A stretch of 64,000 nucleotides of DNA, taken from NCBI GenBank assembly GCA_965637545.1, contig OZ281495.1, positions 22,010,001-22,074,000 on the forward strand. Direction: 5' to 3'. The stretch is from Phallusia mammillata. Taxonomy: Eukaryota. Under the pieces are notes generated by a model. The model worked only from the letters and a program-made list of their open reading frames with translations. It was not told where the DNA came from and did no database searches. The translations under genes were made by a program, and so were the position numbers. Of this stretch, positions 33,815-47,897 are shown piece by piece (position 1 is the stretch's first letter; each line of letters opens with the position of its first letter).

Positions 33815-36097
33815 AGGAAAGGGTCGTTTTGTTCACAACAAAACAATTTGATTAAACGGTACTCTAAACAAAGTTTACATTTCAAAATCAAATAATAACA
33901 CCACACATTAAATGCAATTATGTATCAAAACTTTGTGATAGTCTTGCATTATCTAAGCTAAAATCTATAAATTTAAGCTACACAGTTCACTAACAAATGA
34001 CATTGCATTTGTTTTTATGAACTTAAATAACTTTTACCACCTTCACTATATTAAAAGAAAAGTTGTTGGCATTTCATGACCCATACAATGTTAATAACGA
34101 AGGTACAATTAATAAATACACAAGTACATAGTGTTCCTTAAAATATTAAAAATTCCATTTTCAAATAAAGGATGTTAACAAAACATATATTAAAAAACAT
34201 TTAGATTATGTCTGGTGCATTCCATCTAACTAATAGTAAAAGCTCATTAATAAGGACATCCTGTATCATGTACATCTGCATTGCCAGGATTTTGTAGAAA
34301 GAAAATTTACAATTAAACACAGTAACAATATAATAACATCACATAACTTTTAAAAATCTATAAGCGATTTCACAACACAAATATTTGAGTAAATTCACCA
34401 AGCACATTTACTGAAACCGGTGCTGCCACATGCAACTTGAACCAACGACTTGGCGGCATGAATAAAGATATGCTGCAATGCCTCGGCACACATCAGCAAC
34501 AACGCCCATATGTACACAACGTACGAAGGATGGCGAACAGTATCTATTATCCAGACTCACGTCGAAAGCGACGAACTTAACTAAAATTCAAAATTAATCA
34601 GCGCTACTCAGCAGCCGCTCGTTTTTGTCCAAAGCAGTTGTTGTTTTGTGCGTTCGTTGAAGCGTGACGATGGCTACACCACCAGTAGATCAGCTTTTGT
34701 GTGTTACAGCGACCGTTAAAAAATCATCTAAAACCAATTTGTTCCATTCATATAATGATAAAATACATTTTTTTGTCTAGCTAAGTGACTAACCAGCTAC
34801 ATAAAAACAAACTGCAAAGACTGCTTTGCTGCTAACACTGCTAAAAACTTTCTTCCGGCGCAAAAACATGCGATGATTAGGTCTTTTATTTGTATTTACA
34901 ACTTTCTCAACAGCATTACACGATTACGCGTTCAATGTAATACAGAACACATGCGCAATGGGTGCAGGAACGAAAGACGCAGTGTGGCCATTTCGCAAAC
35001 GAGAACACAATTAAACCATGCTGCAGCAAGTGCTTGCCACGGCTTAAACGATTTTTATGTTAGCAAATGGCACGGCCACATGCGTTAAGTCACAAAAAGA
35101 CCCACTAAAGGACGAAATGCGCAGTTAGACTGGGCACATTTTCAGCCCTTGTCACCTTGTTAAAAAATTCGCCCTTTGGGACGCAGTAGTCAAATTAACA
35201 TAAATGTTGGGATTTGCACACAAAAATTCCAGTGAACTTTTTTCGGCGAGCAAATATCACGACATGCGATACAATCAAAACTGCACACGTCAAAAAACGA
35301 AGGAAAAGAGATTTTTAAAGGAGAAAAATTCGACACACATTTTTGATGTATAATTTTACGCTGGGTTGTCTATACCAGTTAATTAAGATTCGACACTACC
35401 GAAAACACATGGGTTCCTACAGCCACAAGCATGCCAACGTTTTCTGGCAGGTCTGGATAAAACAAACCTGCATACACATAAAAAAAAACAACTCTGAAAC
35501 TATTGAACGTTCAATACAAAATGGTAAAACATTTTATGTAAAAAGTGGATGGACACACAAAGAAAAGAAAAAGGCGAAAGTGTAAAAGAAATGAATAAAC
35601 TAAAGCTTGAGGTATTTTGCCTCAAGTCCAGAAATAAATGTCGCGCAGGTACAGTTCAATTAAAACGGTGAACATATAACCCAGACGCGCAGCATTCATG
35701 ATTGAAAAGCGCGCGTGCAAGAGAATTAAAATGCGGGCACTGCAATAGTCAAGTGCAATTGGTTGCGTCAGCCAACTGCCTGTTTTGGCGTCAAACCCGC
35801 GCGTTTTAATAATATCAGGCAGTAGATTTGAATGCGTCACATAGGTAGAATACAGGCATACAACCGCACTGAATCATACACACACATACATACGCGTGAT
35901 AGTCAACAGATGAACTGGCTTTGGAACGGAGGACAAAGAACACAGACTCCCATACATCTTTGGCACAATTGCGGTTTTGCACTCACACACTCGTGGAAGG
36001 ACATAAACACTTAGCGCACTCACACCACGGATTAAGACAATTCCAGATGTCTGTTGCTGTTTTGCTTGAGCTGAGAAGTTTACCGACTTGGTCGCCG

Positions 36098-39000
36098 CTA
36101 CATTATTTCCTCGTCCAGTGCATGAACACAGTCGGCTCCCAGTGGTAACTTGCTGTCGTTCAGCAGTAGAGGAGCGTTCACTTCGCAGTCGTGGACCGAG
36201 AGCTCCGGCAAGAGATTTGAACCCCACGAGTCACAATCTGTTAGACGTACAAAGGAAATACTGCTTATATAGTCACTCGTCAACATACGCTTGTACTTTA
36301 GCTGACGCAAGGTTGAGAAATTGCCTTTGTGGCTTAACGTTTATTGGTAACGTGGCTTTTCAGTTAAGTGGCATAGTAAACTGTACAAGAAAATGCGAAA
36401 CAGACTTTCAAAACTATCATGGCACTAATATTTACTAAAGTAATCACACAAGTTTTAATTTGATTTACATACCAGCAGTTGAACTGAAAATGTCTCGCTG
36501 TAGAAACAAGTTTCGTAGTGGCTCGTTTCGTCCGTCACGTTTCTCTCCTGTAACAAAATTACCCATTGTATTTTTTTGAAGAAAAATGAGGTTTTTCAAT
36601 TCTTAATTTGGCGACGCTGCCGGCTTATTTGATGTCTGCGGGTTAAGGTTTTAATAGAGAAACGGCTAAGGCTGCTGAATCATGAGATTTAAAAGCAATT
36701 AATGCCTAGCGTGCAAAGAAACCTCACCTGTACAGCCGTAACCCGTTCCAGGCTGAAGTAACACATTGACGAACTGCTGTAACTGAGCTGGGTTGCGGCT
36801 TTTGGCTGAAAAAGTAAACATACATTTCGTTAGGAACGATGTGTTTCTCGAATTAGGAAAGGGGAATTCACGCAAACCAACCATTATGCAAAACACTACG
36901 AATTCCCGTTTAATATGTCACTTGTAATATAAGATTCTTGGAAGGTTAATGATTTTAATAAATGCCCAAATAAATCATTTTACTTCATATGAAACATGGA
37001 AATAGTGTGTAACTAACCTTGTGACGCGTTTCCATTGTACATCGCTTGACTTTCCCGGCTCAGACACCTTCGCTTTTGGCTGGGAAGTAGAGGTGCTGTA
37101 GGTGATGCAAACTTGCCCGCCGCATTACTTGAGTGGTTCCGCTTGCGAGCGTAAGCGTTGTGCAGGTCTGCGTTGGTTAAATTGCCCACATATCCACGCT
37201 GTAGATTCGCTTTGTGCTCAGCAAACTTCTCATCCCGCACAGGTACGGTTTGGTACTTTTGAAATCGGCCAATATCTCGAGCCAAGGATCTGGGGCCCTG
37301 CGACTGTGGTCCTTCGTCGCACTGATAGCCACCGGGAAGGCTGATCGGACTTCCGCAGTACGCGCTGTCGCACGGGCTTATGGAGCTTCGACGAAAGTCG
37401 TGCGTGTTGTACGGTAACGGCGGTGGCCCCTCCTTGTCGAACAAGGGCAGTGGCATCATGCGCGTCATTCCGCTGCTGCCGTTATCGATTTGATTCTGCG
37501 CCTATTGGAACGAATTCGATGTTAAGCAAACAGCTATGTACAAGGTGGGGGTAGATAAGAGAACAAGAAGCGGTTTATTCGGTAGCCTAAGTTTACTCTG
37601 TTATTTAGATTAACGTACTGCTGTGGGTTTGTAATACAAGCTTTACCTGATTAAAGTAATACTCATGCGCGACGAACATACGCGAGTAGTTGCATTAAAT
37701 GTGAAGCGTGTAGGAGAATTATCATAAAATCGCCAAAGTTAAAAATACATTTTCGTGCAATCAGCGGAGTCTGTCTGCACGAATTTCGTTTCTCTTTGAA
37801 AATACCTCGCACACATCGCATGACGTACATGCACCACTAAATGCCGCAGGCGGTTACAGTGCAAAAGATCAACAAACTATGCGAACCGCGGGGCACAGTT
37901 TATAGCTAATAAAGCATATTTTGTGTTCAGGGAAGAAATATTGTGCTGGGTGCTTGACGTCAGGCAGGGAGGAAGTTGTAAGAAGGGGCCACCTAATCTG
38001 ACCCAGCACACCATTTAAGCGACGTCAAAGCACGAATTCATGACCACGTAGGAAAACAGGGGTCTATGGCGGAAAGGGTGTTCTGCCCTGTACCTTTTGA
38101 TTGGTTCTCAAGGATGGGTATTAGATTGTAAACCAGGGGCGCCTGACCATTAGCACGTCATTTATATGGCAAGAATAAATCTGACGCTTACCTCGGAAGG
38201 CGGGGATGCAATGACAAACGCGTTTTGCTGCTGTTGACCCTCGTGACATGGTTTTTGGATTGCAGTATTTTCGACAGCCACATCACGAAACAAATCCTCC
38301 AATTGTTCTGCAATTTTGAAAAACAATTGGAATCGCTAGTCATTTATTTGTCAGTTGCAAAAGCAAACATTCAACCTGGTAGGGTAATTATTTTCTAACT
38401 AAGGGATCGAATACGCAACAAATCGATATATTGATAAAATATATTGCTTACCTTTTTCAGGTGAACTGTAGGTCCATGGATCTCCGATAGAGGGAGCGTT
38501 GAAAATGAGATTCTCATCCAATGTTATTTCTGCGCAAAGAAGTTTTAGTTTATTAAGGGTGGCTTTCGAATTTCGAAACAAAAAGAAGGAAAAATCCCAA
38601 GTCAAGGAGGTTATATTTAAAAGCACCACCGGCAGTTCGCCGTATTGCGCCATAATTCACCCACCGTCATTTTCGTCCATGTCGGTCAAGGTTAGTGGCA
38701 CAATCTTGAAATCGCCATACGATGGTGGTGCATTTTCCTTGACTGCTAAACAAAAAAGAAATTTAAATATTGGTTCCCATGAAACAAAAGGTGTACAAAG
38801 AGTCTACTGTCATAGTATAAAGGACAAACAACTTCAGCAAAATTCCCGATTAAACGTCCTTTTGGGCAGGTTAATCATTTCTAAGATTTGTGTTTAAAAG
38901 ACTTGACTCATTCAACCATCGTTTAACAAACAAACGGAGATTCACTTTGAAGAACTGACCTGGTGTTTCGGTCGGCGCTTTTAGCAAGTCATCGATAAAT

Positions 39001-42000
39001 GCGTTGTTGTCATCCAGCACAAATTTACTGACTTCTTCAATTTCGGCTTTTTCCTGTAAAAAGAAACGCATTTAGCGGTGGCAAAATTCCAGAGGAAGAA
39101 ATCAGTCTATTATTAGAGCGATTATTGAGCCACCATACGGCAAGAAGCATTATACGTAAGGACTAAAATGTATTTAAATTTGGTAGGTTGGTCAGAAGCA
39201 TTTTGCAATACGCTATATGTCGCAATCGAAAGAGGTTTTATGTCAAATTGTGGTATCAGCTGAAATGGTGCGGAAATGCCATTGAGTCGCGAAAAGCTAT
39301 TTCTGGGGTCCGTTCTGGGAAAAGATATCATACCAATCGATTAACGGATTTAAATTTTCTGTATTGTACGCACCTCTTCATCGCTGCTTTCAATGGGAAC
39401 CATATTGAATGGCATTGCTCCAACGCATTGGTGTTGTTCGGTCGAAAATACCACATTCTCGTTCACTGGGCCACTGCAAGAAAACATATTTATGACTTGC
39501 AGAGGACGGTCGCACTAATTAAGTTTTTTAACTACATGACGAAAAGTACCTTAACACGTAGTGGACGCAAACGACGCATTGAGGTTTCTGATTTTTGGAG
39601 CAGGGAATAACAGTGGCCTGCGTCACGATCCAGTGGTAACCACCAGTCTTAGAGAGGAAACGGTAATGAGTGGTTTCAATCTGGTTGAGTCGGTACACTG
39701 TCATAGAAATACAAGAAACATATTGATAAAGTTTAAAGTTGGTATTGGAGACTGCTAGTAGCAATCATAAGACTCACATTTATGGAAGAAGTCTTCAAGT
39801 GGTTTTATATCAAGAACGTGACAGTAGTTGAAGAATGATTTTCCCAGCATGTCACTTTCGTCGTAACCGAGCAATTCCGTCACCCTGAAGCGAAATGCAA
39901 CCATTCACAACATTAGGTCAAATGAAATTGGGCCAAGGGTTAAATTCACAACACTGTGATTCATCGAATAAAGATGAAAATTTAATGTTTACTTTTTTAC
40001 GCGACTATGTATGTAAATCCAGTAGATGCCTTTCCAAACCGCCAAAGGTTATTGACCTGGCATGTATGACGTTTATGTATAAACTGTGCCCCACCTATCA
40101 TCGCAGTAGGAGAACTTCATGTCAGGCGTATGTTGTGTTAGGAAGGTTTGGCTGTCCAGAAAATGCTCGATGTTTGACGGATGGGGAATCGGCTCGGCTT
40201 GTACAACAAGCAAATTCGAGTTGTTGTCATCTGTAAAAAATCCTTTAGGTCATGGTGTGTTCGAAATGGTGGCTTATTGATGGTGTTAATCCGAAAACAT
40301 ACCTTTGACAACCTTGCGGAACCCACTGCACTGAAGTACCTAAAACATAAATGTTAACTGTTGAACAATGGAAACCAAAGATCTTAATGGGTAATTATCC
40401 TAAAAATATTACATGTTGGTTAATGGACTGTGCATAATACACGAATATCCGGAAATTCCAGAAATAGCAGGTAAGTGACAAAGGCAAAAAATACCGGCAA
40501 ACATGTTTTGACGGGACGGTCGGCCACAGACAAAAGAGCCGCTGTCCGTCGCCACTGAAGGGGTGAAAGCAAAGCTGCAAAAGCGCGGCCCAGATCGTGG
40601 TAAACAAGTCTAGCTGCTCATTTGAGCTAAGCGCAGGATAACGAAAGAGAAAGCAACAACTGACGCATATTCGGGGGCTCAATACGTGTTTCGCGCAATC
40701 GGAAGCAGCGAGGCGTGTTACAAAAACAAGTAGGACTCGCTTGAACCTTGGTCACATGACCCGGGCTCTTTATCTGCTGCAGACGCACAAGGTTAAACAC
40801 TTTACCGGCAACGACGAGAATTTTCCATTGTTTTTTATGCCAAAAATACAGTGCGAAACCGAAAAATTTAACTCGGACGCTTATTCCATAGGACTTCACT
40901 CAACAGAAACTGTATTAAAATGGTCACAAATAAAAATATACTGCCCACTAAAACAACTTTTAACTAACACAAAACATATTAACAATAGTTTGTCATTTAT
41001 GTTGCTACCACGATTTAACTTTGACACTTGCGCTTATCCAATGGAACTTAACTTAACATAAACTGTTTCAAAATAGGCACAAATAAAAAATATACTGCCC
41101 ACTAAAACAACCTTTAAACTAACAGAAAACATATTTACAACAGTTTATCGATTGTGTTGCACCACGGTCTGTAGGAATATTAATCAATTACGATCTGAAT
41201 AAAAAACAAACATTTTTGCAGTTGTCGCAAAATTGACACGAAAGTAGTTTAGCGGCATCGCAGAATGTGCAATAAGCCGGGGGCGCCCCGATCGTGATTG
41301 GGCTATTCTCGAAACGACCAGAATGTAAGAAGAGACAAGAACTGATTGACCAAAACAAGAGCACACAAGAAATAGACTAGCCCGCCGAGCGATGTGCGTA
41401 CGTGAGCGCTCAAAACCAGCAATGGCGGCAGAAAATTTGTCAGCGCTGGTCGGGCTTATGCCATCGACTGGTTCTACTTACAGCACACAGTGGACAGTAT
41501 AGTTTCGTTTGTAACACTACTTTCATTCTTGTTGGAACGCGAGTTTTAGAGACAACAGTTAACACTTTGTGCTAGTTAGGAATACATTTATCGACAAAAC
41601 CACGACCACAACGGTAAGTAAACGCACAGAACAAACAAGTGACTAATGATCTACCAACCAACCTTGTAGGACGCTGATTTCAAGTTGATGCTTTTGCCGT
41701 TGACAGTTAATGTGCTCTTCATTCGCAAAAAGAAGGCTTTGTGAGTTGAACGTTCAGTGACTAAAATAAACAAATACACACAGTTGGTTTAACATTGTGG
41801 TTGGTATAACACTGTACGAATTTGATTATGGTACATGTTTGGATTACACTTACCATCAGATTCATTTAGGCACCCTCTTATTTCCTCATGATCACCTTCA
41901 TGGACAAAGCTGAGTATGCTTTGACCAATAAGATCCAACTGCAAAAGATTAAACACCACAAACTTAACCCTTTACCAAACTACACAATCACACTGTCAGT

Positions 42001-42905
42001 GGTTGCAAGCTTTTTACCTTGGATAAACCCAGGTAGTCCTTAACATTTTCAGAACAGTACAGAATATCAGAATCAGGGGAAAGAATAAATAAAAATCCAT
42101 TTAGGGCATTCACAAAGTCTTCACTTGCCAGAAGATGTTCATCCTCCAAAATTTCTTGTTTTACACTGAGATCTGGTAATAATGTTTAGTTACATAACAT
42201 GCTGACTACTTTTATCAAATTGTTGGTTGCCAATCGTACCTTTAATTGGAAGTGTATTTGGGTCCACATATGCCTCACATTTGCCAGTCAAACTCTGTCG
42301 CAGTCTTATGTAGCTGTTTACAAGTCGCATGATGGATGATCTAAAATTTTAAAGAATATTTTATATTTTTTTGTAAAATGTTATGATACATTTATGCCAT
42401 AGCAAAAAAACTAAATTCCAAACAATATACCTTCCATTTGAAATTGTTTTTAGTGAAAACTGTTACATCTACTGTTGGTTACATAACAAACCACATTTAG
42501 GGTAAAAAGCGCCCATGGAGTCAATCATTACACAATGAGAAAAGGTGCCCACATTACACACAAAGGACTTGGGCTCCTACTACCTGTCAAGGTTGCTGAC
42601 AAGGTCATGTGAAACAGGGAGGAGGTTGGCAATTTCTTGAAAATATACAGTTTCTTTCGTCCTTCTATGCCTGGCAGCATCCCTGCTCTTTTCTCGCCTC
42701 CTTTGCCTGCAATAGAGTATTATGTTAGTGCAAAGCCAACAATAATACCAGTATTTATGTTGCTATTGGTAAATTAGCTACACTACAACATGGAATATTA
42801 GTATGATCACTCACTTTTTAGCCATTGGTAGTGGAATAACAGTATGATCACTTACTTTTTAGCCATTGATGGTTTGAGTTCTTCTTCTTCGGGAAAGACA
42901 GACAT
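36098..42905 (-). CDS. HIF1A/EPAS1-like: Hypoxia-inducible factor alpha subunit (bHLH-PAS-PAS-PAC, ODD-like region, C-TAD)
   Basis: 18 phase-compatible coding exons: 42905-42856, 42706-42584 ([17 protein letters not shown]), 42340-42240 ([14 protein letters not shown]), 42172-42018, 41938-41854, 41760-41663 ([10 protein letters not shown]...NLKSASYK), 40339-40303, 40230-40095 ([10 protein letters not shown]...DMKFSYCDD), 39884-39778, 39697-39550 ([20 protein letters not shown]...[11 protein letters not shown]), 39473-39374 (VVFSTEQ...PIESSD), 39053-38960, 38742-38665, 38529-38452, 38307-38192, 37501-37018, 36805-36728, 36237-36098 ([19 protein letters not shown]). Confidence 0.95.
40922..41170. 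repeat. Diverged direct duplication (~95-bp unit, ~155-bp spacing) in HIF-alpha intron 6
   Basis: CACAAATAAAAATATACTGCCCACTAAAACAAC...AACATATT...CCACG occurs at ~40922-41015 and ~41076-41170. Confidence 0.75.
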
Positions 42906-43072
42906 GTCTTCTATTCGTTGTAGTACTAAATCAATCGCAAATATCACTGGTCTGTTAATAAGACAACAAAAAAAGTATGGTTCTTAAATCACTTTGAAGT
43001 TTGAACTATACTAATACAAAACAATTTAAACCAAAACAACAGTATGATTTTGTGCACAAAGGGACAGCTCAC

Positions 43073-43630
43073 CAAATAAAGTAATTTAGTGGTCTAATTA
43101 TACAACTACTTGCAAATAGCTACACATTCACTTGCAACAATACGATTGTCTGCAACAATACCTTTGTCTGCACGTAACTAACTCTTTTTGAAACACGTTG
43201 CATATATTATTTCCATAACTGTTTCATTACATATTGGCGCTCTGCCTGTTATTGTTTGATGTATTTTTGTAATTAACTACACAACCACTACCAAACGATT
43301 TTAAGACCAGTTCAGATGTCAGATGCCGATATTATTTTGCTGATAACCATGCCTGCTCTCTTGCATTTAGGGGTGTGTCACTGTCAGAGTGTCTGACTAA
43401 ACTTTATTATCAGCTGGACAACAAACACCCACCTTTCCAGCACTCTCCTCTCTCGCGATGACGTCCTACCGCCTCATATTGCGCAACTGGTTCAGCCTTT
43501 CTTTCAAAGCTCGCAGTTTTTCTGACCTCTCTCTTTCTCTCTCTCGTATCAGCTCCAGGCACCAACCAGCGACAATTCTGCGCCTGTCAGGGCACTCCGA
43601 AATCGATCTTGTGCTGTGACACAAAATGCT
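43073..43630 (-). other. Putative non-coding 5' UTR exon of HIF-alpha containing several upstream ATGs
   Basis: Acceptor TTTTTACAG at 43632/43631 and donor G|GTGAGC at 43073/43072, upstream of the acceptor at 42951 that leads to the HIF ATG. No long ORF in any frame. Splice signals only. Confidence 0.5.
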
Positions 43631-44899
43631 CTGTAAAAATTAAAAGGCCGCTGCTTCCTCTTGTATAAAACTGAATAGTAAGTGAATGCGAATCAAGGTT
43701 TTTTTGAAGGCTATCTGGCAATTAAAGGCTAACAAAAATTTGCCGCAATCCTATATTTTTGCATGCAATACGAAAAATCAGCATTCTGCAACTTTGTGTC
43801 AAAGCTTATTTAATTTTATTTATAAAGGATTGATTAAAAAACAAAAACTAAACATCAAAAATATACTACTTATGAACATTTAAAGCCTGGACGTAATGCA
43901 ACAGAAAACCATTATATCAGATTTAAAACAGTGGTTTCTAACTTTTAGTGTTAATACCCCGTTATGATTCGTTAAGTTGGCGTGCCCCTACAAATTCACA
44001 AGAGGATTTGTGCATTTTGTGGTGTAACAATTTAACTTTTGGAACATGAAAAAGGATGCATCGAACCCCCGGACGCTTTCAAGAAACCCTTTAAAGTTTA
44101 CATAAATCAATAACATGCAATCGGCTCAGTTCCATACAAAACAACAGCCTCGAGCTAGATGTTGAGGGGCAATTCATTAAATCTAAAATCATTCAGACAG
44201 ATCTTTAGCGGCAGTTGGTGGTAGCACATTTTAAAATTCTCATGATAAAATATACTTAAAGATACTATTCTTTCAAAAAATGCAATATTGATAAATGTGC
44301 GATTTAAACTATATTCAGCAAATACTTTTTGCTTTTGGCCAAAACCATGTAGTGTGGGATCACCAAAACAGCAAAAAACAACAATTCCGGTAACTGAAGC
44401 CGTCAAAGTAAACCAACTAATAAACTCAAAAGGTAAGTACATTAAATACAACCAAAGGATTTTTAATACTCTTTAAAACAAACCCTTCTTTTACAAAAAC
44501 TTTTTTAAAACAAGTAATTGAGTACTGGGGACTTTCCCTCATTCTTTTTTTAAGGCAGGGATTTACCAAATACCGTAGCCAATTTATTTAGTATACATCT
44601 TGCATTTTCAAATAATGCATTTACTGAAGTAGTGCACCAAATAAAAACAGAGAATGTTGTCCAAACTAAGAGTTGTAGCGGTTGCGACATAACTTGTTAT
44701 TATTTTTTGACTTTTGAGATAACAAAATCAAGCGAAAACTGCTAAAGTAACCAACTTTTGTTTAACAAACACAAAGTTTTTGACGAGTTTCATCATAGAT
44801 AGCTAGTGGTAATCTATAGTTTATTTAGTTACCGAAGAGACAAAAAGGAGGCAACGATAAGATTCTCAATCACAGCAATATTCTATTAAATTAAAACAA

Positions 44900-45175
44900 C
44901 AGGTGTACGTGACTTTATTGCTTTTTGTGCAACGTAGCGTAAAATAAGTCACGTGACTTTGTTGATGTTCGCAATTATGAAACTTCTTTGCTTTTGTTGT
45001 AGTTTATTTTGTTCGTGGGTAAAACTCAAGTCAAGTATTTAAAAATCGTATATAGGAATTGCCTGAACCTGGGTGGCTGGGGTGTCGGCATATGTAAGTT
45101 GAATAAAGATTAGAACGCATCTGAATACGAAGTCAAACCTTGGACCTGGCTAATGGCCATTGCCTACGTGACTAC
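44900..45175. promoter_or_regulatory. Candidate bidirectional promoter between HIF-alpha and ETHE1 with clustered ACGTG/E-box motifs
   Basis: TACGTGAC at 44906-44913, palindromic GTCACGTGAC at 44948-44957, TACGTGAC at 45165-45172, between the 5' ends of two divergent genes. Confidence 0.5.
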
Positions 45176-45381
45176 TGACTAGTCATGAGGTGCAAGTACG
45201 AACGAAGTACCTGCATTGCAAAACAGTTAACTTTGGCGTTTGACAATTCGTTGCTAAAGTTATTTGAGTTAACGAAATATAAGTTGTTTTAGTGACGTTT
45301 TAGATAAAAAATTGTTTTTGGTAGTTACAGAATTTGTTGTTACCCTGGTTTTTATAATAGTATTTTGTCTGCAAATAAAAT

Positions 45382-47897
45382 ATGAAGTCTTTTCTTTCCT
45401 TGGGTCAAAAAATGTTGATGAAACTTTCTGCCATACGTAATTCTGCTTCAATGTATGTTTCGGATTGTGTAATGCTATAGTTAAGCTGTAGAAACTTTTA
45501 TAATTGCTATTTTAAACTATTTTAGCTTGCAACAAATCAGGTATGCTCATGTGACCAAGTTGGGCAATCAAGCTAAGGGACTGCTGTTTCGACAGGTAAC
45601 TGGGAGCATTGTAATATAGCATATTTAACATTATAAAATCTTGTGTTCAACACTTTTTTCTAGTTGTTCCATGATGCATCTTACACATACACATACTTTC
45701 TTGGCTGTGCAAAAACCCGCAAAGCTGTGGTCATAGATCCTGTCTTAGAAATGGTATGTCAGCATTAAAATTTCTGGTTGATTCCATTCTAAACATATGA
45801 TCATATAGTAAGAAAAACTTTTTTTCAGGTGGACAGGGATATTAAGTTTATAGAAGAAATGAATCTGAAACTAGTTTATGGATGTAAGTTGTGCTTTATT
45901 TATAACATTTTATCAAAATAGAGTTTTGGAAATACTTTGCAGTAAACACCCATGTCCATGCTGATCATGTAACTGGAACAGGAAAATTAAAACAAAGAAT
46001 TCCTGGGTTTCAATCAGTGTTATCGAAAGCATCTGGTGGAAAAGCTGATATGTTAATTGAGGATGGTGAAGTCATTCAGTTTGGTGAACAGGTGCATAAA
46101 AATTATATTTTGATGTGTATAGGTATTTGCAAATAAAAATTAGATACTTTTAACTCCTGAGAAAGATATTATTCAGTGGAAGTTGTCTTGATAACTGAAA
46201 TAAACACAATTAAAAAATGTTCAATTTGGTCTGTTTAAAGTTCTTTCAGGTGATACAAAAGTGCCATGGTATTGCTACTTTATTCACTGTGCAACCTTTT
46301 GGTATTAGTTTGCACAAGTGGCTGATTTACTGAAACCACCATAGCCTTTTTGGATTAAAGGACATAATTTTGACAGTCAGCTAATTTCAGTTTGTTTAAT
46401 TTGGCACCAGCTAGGTTATTGTTTGCATTAGTTCATTCACTTTATGTCTATGACATTTTTTCTCAACCAGCGGTTCATAAAGAAACAAATTAGTCATAAA
46501 TCCTAAAAAGAATATGTTCAGCAAAATGTTCGATTAAAATAAGTCAAAAAATACTGTGTGTTTGTTTCATGACAAGCTTGAATTGCTTTAGTATGTTTAT
46601 TGGTTTTTGTAGTCAATTCACTGTTCTGCAACCCCTGGACACACAAATGGCTGCATGACTTACATTCTACCAGATCATTCAATGGCCTTCACTGGCGATG
46701 CACTTCTTATTCGAGCATGTGGAAGAACTGATTTTCAACAAGGCATGGTTACATTGTTGTAAAATTGTTTCAAACCAATGTAAAAAGTACCATGTACAGA
46801 TGATGTGCAATGTGCTCACGTTGTTAAGACTCTATATTGTGTAAGCTGCATCCCAATATGTTTAGTTAATGTTGTACTTCCTTCCATTTTAGGAAATGCA
46901 GGGCAGCTGTACGATTCAGTGTACAAACGAATTTTTTCTTTGCCTGATCATTACTTCCTCTATCCAGGCCATGACTACATGGGTAAGCATAAAAGCTGAT
47001 GTTTGCTAAGGTCGGAACATTTTCTGGAGTGTACTTTAGTGGTTAACAGAAAACATAAATTTGCACAGTCAGGTATTTGACTGGCTGGCAAAGAAGGTTT
47101 AATAAATTTGAGTTCACAAATGTGTGCTTCCCTACTTGATTTTTCTTACTTTTACACAAATTGCATATTCATGGAAACTTTGTGTAGATTTGTTTGATTA
47201 AATCCCCAAGTTGCTGCTGTGGATTCTATGCACAGAGGACCACCTTTACAAAAGAAGTGTGTTTCTACTTTTTTCTGTTTTACAGGCTTTTCTGTGACGA
47301 CAGTAGCCGAAGAGAAAGTTCTTAATCCTCGTCTCACACTGAGCAGAGATGAATTTATCAACTTCATGAAAGAGCTGAACCTGAAGTATCCAAAACTTAT
47401 TGGTATAATCTAAAATACAAGTGTATTTGGTGTGTGTTTGTATGTTTATGCTTAAAGAAGTTCTTTTACAACGTTTTTTGCAGTATTGAAACCGACCAAA
47501 CATGTCCAGTAAAAAATATGCATATATAAACAATGCATTCTAAAAACAGCAAATCAGCAAAAGTAGTGTTTGCCGGTCTCAAACATGGCCTTTGGCTTAG
47601 TTGCTTTATGTTTGCTCGTTGAGTGTACCTGTGGTCTACCCAGAGCACCTATAACACTAGATTCTTTGTCAAGTGTAGGGTGAATAAACCAATAAACGAA
47701 TGGGTGTGTCATTTGTTGTGCAGCAATTCAGCAACTTGAAAATTAATCTACATTCACTACCTGTTGCTTTATTTATTTATTTTTTGAAAAAAATGTTTTG
47801 TTTCTTATCAGACATCGCTGTACCAACGAATCTCAAATGTGGTGAGATCAGCAAAGAGGCTCTACAAGGATCTGCGGAACTGCTCAGCAAAAAATGA
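45382..47897 (+). CDS. ETHE1: Mitochondrial persulfide dioxygenase (metallo-beta-lactamase fold)
   Basis: 9 exons: 45382-45452 (alternative in-frame ATG 45412), 45526-45595 (GLLFRQ), 45664-45753 (TYTYFLG...AVVIDPVLE), 45829-45883, 45943-46091 ([11 protein letters not shown], HxHxDH), 46613-46742 (TPGHTNGC...[19 protein letters not shown]; GC donor), 46893-46982 (YPGHDY), 47286-47402 ([12 protein letters not shown]), 47812-47897 (AVPTNLKCG). Confidence 0.95.

Follow-up and report, generated by a model that had tools for sequence, protein, structure and literature searches.

The PHDs hydroxylate the proline of LxxLAP motifs, with some tolerance at the −2 position (e.g., RAP in the Sima protein of Drosophila). 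The initial annotation of the window analyzed here (the whole stretch of 64,000 nucleotides from contig OZ281495.1 of Phallusia mammillata) pointed to a HIF-alpha gene in which both of the putative oxygen-degradation motifs read Asn-Ala-Pro (NAP) instead of Leu-Ala-Pro. The question raised by this locus is whether a site with Asn at −2 can still function as a PHD/VHL degron, or whether this residue is an accident, an artifact, or the mark of a second modification.

The gene is the HIF-alpha of the ascidian Phallusia mammillata, as had been proposed, and it is found on the minus strand between positions 36098 and 42905 (start to stop codon). The limits of the gene were obtained from a tblastn search with the public protein CAB3252826.1 (HIF hypoxia inducible factor [Phallusia mammillata]), which matches the window at 760 of 761 amino acids with a single residue that differs, and from RNA joints from position 40232 downstream. 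The spliced frame translated from the RNA-defined exons is open down to the stop codon, and there are no runs of N in the window. The PAS-B exon matches PAS_3 and PAS_11 of Pfam, and the precomputed Pfam list for CAB3252826.1 contains PF23171 (bHLH_HIF1A), PF00989, PF08447, and PF14598. The protein thus has the arrangement used to define the HIF subfamily, a bHLH followed by a PAS-A and a PAS-B domain, both of the HIF type, and its best full-length matches outside of the tunicates are vertebrate HIF-1alpha proteins. The gene is present as a single copy, the only HIF-alpha copy found in this analysis. Nothing from Rfam was found across the gene region.

The exon structure was determined from RNA contigs that represent four runs, drawn from four studies. 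Each of the exon joins from PAS-B to the C-terminal activation domain (CTAD) is confirmed with GT..AG joints, one consistent chain is found in all four runs, and a single contig of 3563 bases spans from PAS-B to the 3′ end. The joins of the initial annotation, for which a cDNA check had been suggested, are correct according to these contigs. In the direction of transcription, the exons defined by RNA joints are located at 40094–40232, 39778–39883, 39550–39697 (the last PAS-B exon, with a Pfam match to PAS_3, which served as the query for the representative search), and 39373–39473, followed by the three exons of the degron region. Exon A (38960–39052) is bounded by the joints 39052>39373 and 38742/38745>38960. 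Exon B, which carries site 1, begins at an alternative NAGNAG acceptor and extends from 38665 to either 38742 (runs X5 and X13) or 38745 (runs X1 and X2), and one Ala is omitted or added as a result. Exon C, which carries site 2 (38452–38529), is bounded by the joints 38529>38665 and 38307>38452 in four of four runs. The remaining exons are found at 38191–38307, 37018–37500, 36727–36805, 36473–36546, and 36098–36237, the last of which is the final coding exon; it is attached by the joint 36237>36473, encodes the CTAD (PF08778), and contains the stop codon at 36098–36100. A recent duplication was considered for exons B and C, which are both 78 nt in length and of the same phase, and was rejected because the similarity of their DNA is reached by 132 of 500 shuffles.

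All three of the NAP tripeptides were confirmed at the minus-strand positions where they had been placed originally. Site 1 is Asn415-Ala416-Pro417, encoded by AAT GCA CCA at 38734–38726. Site 2 is encoded by AAC GCT CCC at 38500–38492, with Ala449 directly before the putative target Pro450; the motif NAPSIGDP, as defined by tunicate alignments and a shuffle test, comprises residues 448–455 (38477–38500). The third tripeptide is part of DCEVNAP in the CTAD, where the codon for the FIH-target Asn735 is at 36178–36176. Leu at −2 is replaced by Asn at both degron sites, as it is in all of the tunicates compared. The residue at −5 is hydrophobic in both cases, Val in site 1 and Leu in site 2, and the two sites are separated by 33 residues. 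The only xAP motifs within the coding exons are KAP, NAP, NAP, TAP, and NAP. From 35500 to 47000, none of the minus-strand frames contains an [LIMV]AP, which extends to the entire gene the earlier statement that the degron region lacks LxxLAP. The composition of the protein predicts 0.156 NAP tripeptides, and at least three are obtained in 8 of 20000 shuffles, so the three that are found exceed chance. The two degron sites differ in their codons, and recent gene conversion therefore does not explain their identity. The KAP of exon A (38973–38981) was considered as a degron and rejected, since it matches the KEP upstream of the human N-terminal degron (NODD) and is absent from the other tunicates.

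The tunicate comparison included seven proteins from three ascidian orders and an eighth tunicate-like gene recovered from metagenome contigs (locus L003). At site 2, NAP.IGDP is invariant in all seven proteins, with Ser, Cys, or Tyr at +1, and the eighth gene reads NAPYIGDPW. Seven of the eight columns of this site are invariant, more densely than in any other block from PAS-B to the CTAD, and this density is matched in none of 20000 shuffles. Asn is thus found at site 2 in eight of eight fast-evolving genes, and at site 1 in all four of the intact copies, which are those of Phallusia and three stolidobranchs. The stolidobranchs have an identical heptad at both sites. The Ala-Pro of site 1 has been lost in two species of Ciona, in Clavelina, and in the Phallusia-like relative (L003), which indicates that this site is dispensable in those lineages. 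Position −5 is occupied by V, I, L, or M in each of the tunicate NAP sites, for a pattern of Φ-x-x-N-A-P; the upstream flank otherwise varies freely, and the conserved positions are found downstream. LXXLAP is bound in a 3-10 helix mode, and the hydrophobic residue at −5 fits this mode of binding (PMC5007464). Since NAP is fixed in all eight genes, it is, as judged from these alignments, a conserved and lineage-specific version of the degradation signal and not a one-off oddity. The substitution first noticed in Phallusia mammillata is therefore real, but it is not peculiar to that species. A word search with the degron region (residues 385–480) returned only the query itself, and a profile made from all seven proteins retrieved no further tunicates from the collection searched.

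Alignment with MAFFT, in both the L-INS-i and E-INS-i modes, places site 1 column for column with the L/V-A-P-x-x-G-D..(I/V)PL of seven non-tunicate NODDs (amphioxus, a hemichordate, echinoderms, molluscs, and chicken, counted as "six other phyla"). By position, site 1 is the homologue of the NODD, in agreement with the original alignment to the human sequence. Site 2 was not placed against RAPYIPM; the C-terminal degron (CODD) of the outgroups falls instead over another 11-residue stretch. With PSSMs built from the non-tunicate NODD and CODD windows, site 2 of Phallusia scores about equally for the two classes (−34.5 against −35.1). The match of site 2 to the CODD position in the initial annotation is therefore tentative, also in view of its short distance of 33 residues from site 1. 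The three degron exons have no Pfam match at E values up to 10, and this includes PF11413 (Pfam HIF-1, CODD region), which is likewise missing from the precomputed lists of domains for every tunicate orthologue, whereas it is present in vertebrates. When the PDB was searched with a profile made from the degron region of the tunicates, no HIF peptide was returned, and only a chance match to trigger factor (E 0.26) was obtained. The use of Leu as the baseline for the CODD in the initial annotation was found to be wrong. Of 40 representatives from outside the tunicates that have a CODD-type match, 29 carry Arg and 4 carry Leu at −2, and the residues seen across animals are R, L, K, Q, Y, V, and N; Leu is nearly universal only in the NODD. 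A polar or charged residue at −2 is thus normal in the CODDs of other invertebrates. The crinoid Antedon has acquired MNAP independently. Graham and Presnell described the HIF-alpha of Ciona intestinalis as having a CTAD and no NTAD. We found no description of the NAP variant, including the string NAPSIGD, in the searchable literature on tunicate or invertebrate degrons and no biochemical data there on any tunicate HIF-alpha.

According to a speculation in the initial annotation, FIH could also hydroxylate the Asn of the two degron sites, so that three Asn residues would serve as switches, or Asn and Pro together as a double switch. The CTAD itself is well preserved, as had been noted: PF08778 (HIF-1a_CTAD) matches with an E value of 9.6e-12 and 44.7 bits versus a cutoff of 25, and LSVHDCEVN is a perfect fit to LXXXXX[D/E]VN, the motif preferred by FIH (PMC6488082). 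The tripeptide is the same at all three sites, FIH is promiscuous, a perfect CTAD motif correlates across animals with the presence of FIH (PMC6488082), and the invariance of the Asn calls for an explanation. However, the motif fails at −8, −2, and −1 in both degron sites, where site 1 has P, K, and E, and site 2 has T, I, and F, respectively. Among the tunicates, −1 is F, H, N, R, Q, K, or E, and −8 is not conserved; the conservation lies downstream of the Asn, whereas FIH reads upstream. Even a near-perfect coral CTAD motif, with Ile at −8, is not hydroxylated in vitro (PMC6488082). We consider hydroxylation of the degron Asn by FIH to be very unlikely. It is just as improbable that FIH, or another Asn hydroxylase, and PHD both modify the same seven-residue motif as a two-input oxygen switch, which, if true, would be absent from vertebrates and would account for the invariant Asn at both sites. 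Even less credible is an artifact, in which an exon or isoform with a canonical LxxLAP was missed or the assembly is in error. Isoforms of amphioxus HIF-alpha that alter the N-terminal degron are known (PMC4066832), and the RNA support consists of contigs from only four runs, but the lack of [LIMV]AP across the gene region, the one chain of exons with its 3563-base contig, and the agreement with the independent protein CAB3252826.1 all argue against this reading.

It is conceivable, although we doubt it, that NAPSIGDP is conserved for a different reason, such as docking to another partner or ligase, and that the tunicates have lost the classical PHD/VHL degron or have it elsewhere, with oxygen control through the CTAD and FIH or through another element, e.g., the conserved 11-residue block. 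The absence of PF11413, the failure of site 2 to align with RAPYIPM, the exchange of the near-universal Leu of the NODD for a polar residue, and the repeated loss of site 1 are in accord with this possibility. The conserved core nevertheless retains the key residues for PHD and VHL (Ala-Pro and the hydrophobic −5), the homology of site 1 with the NODD is clear, and the identical heptad at both sites of the stolidobranchs is what would be expected of one writer/reader pair. A less probable view, which we regard as unlikely, is that Asn is simply tolerated at a permissive position with no specific function or effect on the set point. The variability of −2 in CODDs and the independent MNAP of Antedon are compatible with this idea, and according to published reviews, PHD hydroxylation is still possible with substitutions inside LXXLAP (PMC3963164). 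Tolerance does not readily account for the retention of Asn in eight of eight fast-evolving genes at site 2 and four of four intact copies of site 1 while the upstream flanking residues are free to vary, and the different codons of the two Phallusia sites are evidence against recent gene conversion.

The explanation that we modestly favor is that hydrophobic-x-x-Asn-Ala-Pro-(Ser/Tyr/Cys)-Ile-Gly-Asp(-Pro) constitutes a tunicate-specific PHD/VHL degron in ascidian HIF-alpha. In normoxia, the tunicate PHD (EGLN) would hydroxylate Pro450 of the invariant site 2, and it may also hydroxylate Pro417 of site 1, the homologue of the NODD. VHL would then bind the hydroxyproline, and HIF-alpha would be degraded. 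The Asn at −2 would be a fixed and selected residue of the motif instead of a tolerated accident, and its co-evolution with VHL, with the groove in which the tunicate PHD takes up its substrate, or with both is probable. A shift in the oxygen set point, as raised in the initial annotation, may also be involved. FIH would be expected to act only on Asn735 of the CTAD, where the preservation of a perfect FIH motif suggests that the rest of the pathway read-out is intact.

No living group is more closely related to the vertebrates than the tunicates, and we found no biochemistry on their HIF oxygen sensor in the literature. A polar Asn fixed at −2, even in the NODD, where this position is hydrophobic in every other animal examined, would represent a naturally occurring variant in the specificity of PHD/VHL recognition. 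This degron offers an inexpensive system for testing how much of LXXLAP is read and for the study of enzyme-substrate co-evolution. "LXXLAP" is itself a vertebrate-centered consensus, since most of the invertebrate CODDs examined here have R-A-P.

The arrangement in Phallusia resembles the NODD and CODD of vertebrate HIF-1alpha and HIF-2alpha in having a pair of Ala-Pro sites in the region from PAS-B to the CTAD, each with a hydrophobic residue at −5, and a CTAD with an FIH-type Asn. Site 1 and the vertebrate NODD also have in common A-P-x-x-G-D and a hydrophobic (I/V)xL tail. In contrast with the LXXLAP degrons recognized by PHD1-3 and VHL in vertebrates, both sites have Asn at −2, the spacing is 33 residues versus 114–197 in the non-tunicate sequences examined, and the YIPM signature and PF11413 of the vertebrate CODD are missing. 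The M-R-A-P-Y-I-P-M of the CODD from molluscs, echinoderms, the hemichordate, and amphioxus is similar to the tunicate sites in its polar, non-Leu −2 and the Ile at +2, and its A-P-Y-I is also found in one tunicate relative. The tunicates differ from it by having N for R and G-D-P in place of P-M-D after the Ile, and by having N in the NODD as well, where other animals have Leu. For the LXXXXX[D/E]VN motif of FIH, known from HIF CTADs and ankyrin repeats, the CTAD of Phallusia is a match, whereas the degron sites share only N-A-P. The Hif-1alpha-a of otomorph fish, which has a degenerate NODD and a preserved C-terminal site (PMC12784922), parallels the situation in Ciona and Clavelina, but the decay in these fish is variable and confined to one paralogue, whereas the N variant of the tunicates is fixed and found in the only HIF-alpha copy. 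The YXXLAP of TaODD from Trichoplax adhaerens also departs naturally from LXXLAP and is nevertheless a bona fide substrate of PHD, with a solved complex (PMC6235002); there the change is at −5, from Leu to the hydrophobic Tyr, whereas the tunicates have a polar residue at −2.

The three short exons of the initial annotation were found as described on the minus strand within the HIF-alpha gene (42905-36098), in a window that holds no runs of N. Twenty sequencing runs from one organism and six studies were matched, and 14 of these contain about 0.18-0.19 of the sampled words, the level expected for exon-only transcript contigs. RNA contigs of four runs from four studies were aligned to positions 36000-40300 (4301 letters). 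Their GT..AG joints form a single consistent chain with minus-strand exons at 40094-40232, 39778-39883, 39550-39697, 39373-39473, 38960-39052, 38665-38742 or -38745, 38452-38529, 38191-38307, 37018-37500, 36727-36805, 36473-36546, and up to 36237. The whole chain is covered by one RNA contig of 3563 bases, and splicing yields a continuous reading frame of 544 or 545 residues that ends with the C-terminal activation domain (CTAD). The joins drawn earlier agree with these contigs, in which no additional exon was found between PAS-B and the CTAD. The alternative acceptors at 38742 and 38745, each used in two of the four runs, are a NAGNAG pair, and the choice between them decides whether one Ala is present six positions ahead of the first N-A-P. 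Upstream, a 41-bp tandem duplication (42791-42868; 1.9 copies, 91% matches) copies the last part of coding exon 1 along with its GT donor. The copied donor, 41 nt further downstream, is a potential splice site whose use would shift the frame. The long PAS-A/PAS-B intron contains a 153-bp repeat (40878-41166; 1.9 copies, 83% matches).

When the last PAS-B exon was used as the query in an exhaustive search, a protein of 760 residues was found with 100% identity over the exon (CAB3252826.1, "HIF hypoxia inducible factor [Phallusia mammillata]"). This protein is the same as the model spliced at the short acceptor, save for one residue at 41752-41750 (minus strand; context ..VTE[R/S]STH..), which is Arg (CGT) in the window and Ser in the public protein. 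This difference and two between the RNA contigs and the window (G>A at 36771 and C>T at 37301) look like ordinary polymorphisms. Pfam confirmed the PAS fold and the CTAD (PF08778, E = 9.6e-12) and gave no match on the three degron exons, in agreement with Graham and Presnell, who list a CTAD and no NTAD for the HIF-alpha of Ciona intestinalis (PMC5470732).

The coding exons contain five x-Ala-Pro motifs in all: K-A-P (38981-38973), N-A-P at site 1 (38734-38726; Pro417), N-A-P at site 2 (38500-38492; Pro450), T-A-P (about 37096), and N-A-P in the CTAD (36178-36170), all on the minus strand. The reported lack of LxxLAP near the degrons was upheld by a motif scan, in which no Leu-, Ile-, Met-, or Val-Ala-Pro occurs between 35500 and 47000 in any of the three frames of the minus strand.

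Six further tunicate HIF-alphas were identified, from Ciona intestinalis, C. savignyi, Clavelina lepadiformis, Styela clava, and two Styela-like transcripts (runs SRR32906204 and SRR32906209); a profile search returned no tunicate HIF-alpha beyond these seven. An eighth, unannotated gene, close to that of Phallusia and with an intact CTAD, lies in metagenome contigs of 15-30 kb (L003:10001-15300 of JGI 3300027611, L004 of ENA ERZ27241786, and L005 of ENA ERZ27241785). Alignment of the C-terminal halves of the seven proteins leaves just two invariant blocks, N-A-P-x-I-G-D-P at site 2 and L-P-x-L-S-x-x-D-C-E-x-N-A-P in the CTAD. Seven of the eight columns of the site 2 block are invariant, which was equalled in 0 of 20000 column-label shuffles, and the eighth gene reads Y-F-N-A-P-Y-I-G-D-P-W. 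The residue at -5 is V, I, L, or M at all of the tunicate NAP sites.

Site 1 is more variable among tunicates. It is N-A-P-S-I-G-D in three stolidobranch-type proteins and N-A-P-P-S-Y-G-D in Phallusia, and is eroded to Q-Q-P-A-D-D-D and Q-T-P-E-D-D in the two forms from Ciona, K-E-P-E-K-D-D in Clavelina, and T-A-A-S-T-Y-G-E, which has lost the Pro, in the eighth gene. The D-x-x-(I/M)-V-(P/T)-L-type tail downstream is kept in all of these sequences, including the eroded ones. The placement of the first NAP at the N-terminal degron (NODD) was reproduced by MAFFT in two modes, where the Phallusia site lines up exactly with the NODDs of seven species, namely amphioxus, Balanoglossus, Diadema, Leptosynapta, chicken, a chiton, and a scallop.

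Comparisons of the second NAP with the C-terminal degron (CODD), the match proposed for it, gave mixed results. Site 2 has Ile at +2 in common with CODDs, as well as A-P-Y-I in one relative, but MAFFT does not align it with R-A-P-Y-I-P-M, and PSSM scores assign it to neither class; G at +3 and D at +4 are in common with NODDs. The outgroup CODD was instead placed over a block of 11 residues (544-554; 37378-37346, minus strand) that Phallusia shares unchanged with both Ciona and the L003 relative, and from which Clavelina differs at one position. This block resembles a phosphodegron of the D-S-G-x-x-S type. For site 2 three origins are conceivable: relocation of the CODD, a second site of NODD type, or derivation from the extra F-x-P-F-A-P found about 40 residues after the NODD in two echinoderms, Diadema (P0096, residue 454) and Antedon (P0139, residue 460). 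The DNA similarity of the two degron exons (B and C) is not above chance.

Residue -2 was tallied in 51 full-length non-tunicate representatives. NODD-type x-A-P-x-x-G sites have L (35), Y (3), I (1), and Q (1), and CODD-type sites have R (29), L (4), K (3), and one each of Q, Y, V, and N; amphioxus has V-A-P and R-A-P, respectively. The Leu baseline previously assumed for both degrons therefore holds up for the NODD alone. Judged by their sequence context, at least two of the exceptions among NODD-type sites, P0007 (with Q) and P0074 (one of those with Y), are unlikely to be HIF proteins. Among the sequences compared, a polar residue at -2 of a NODD-type site occurs in tunicates only. The sole N in the CODD class, M-N-A-P-L-I-L of the crinoid Antedon (P0139, residue 513), is independent of that in tunicates.

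The initial annotation had also speculated that FIH acts on the degron Asn residues. FIH prefers L-x-x-x-x-x-[D/E]-V-N (PMC6488082), and the CTAD sequence L-S-V-H-D-C-E-V-N is a perfect fit around the FIH-target Asn noted there earlier. Both degron sites miss this motif at -8, -2, and -1 from the Asn (P, K, and E at site 1; T, I, and F at site 2), and these three positions vary freely among tunicates while those downstream of the Asn are fixed. The action of FIH on the degron Asn is not supported by these sequences.

Tunicate HIF-alpha sequences are already in the public domain, one of them under the name HIF. No description of an N-A-P degron, nor the literal string NAPSIGD, was found in a literature search of papers available without subscription, and earlier notice is thus possible.

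The strict invariance of the Asn at two sites in fast-evolving genomes argues for selection at -2, which would most simply reflect co-evolution with the PHD or VHL of tunicates. The main putative hydroxylation site would be Pro450, and Pro417 an auxiliary site lost in several ascidian lineages. When bound to PHD2, the LXXLAP segment forms a 3-10 helix that lies against a hydrophobic patch, a contact of greater weight in the NODD than in the CODD (PMC5007464). A PHD/VHL degron is defined by Ala-Pro, a hydrophobic residue at -5, and an acidic residue downstream, all of which the conserved core retains, and hydroxylation is reported to be compatible with substitutions inside LXXLAP (PMC3963164). 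On these grounds NAPSIGD is read as the tunicate version of the PHD/VHL degron, beside which the YXXLAP of Trichoplax (PMC6235002) stands as another departure from LXXLAP.
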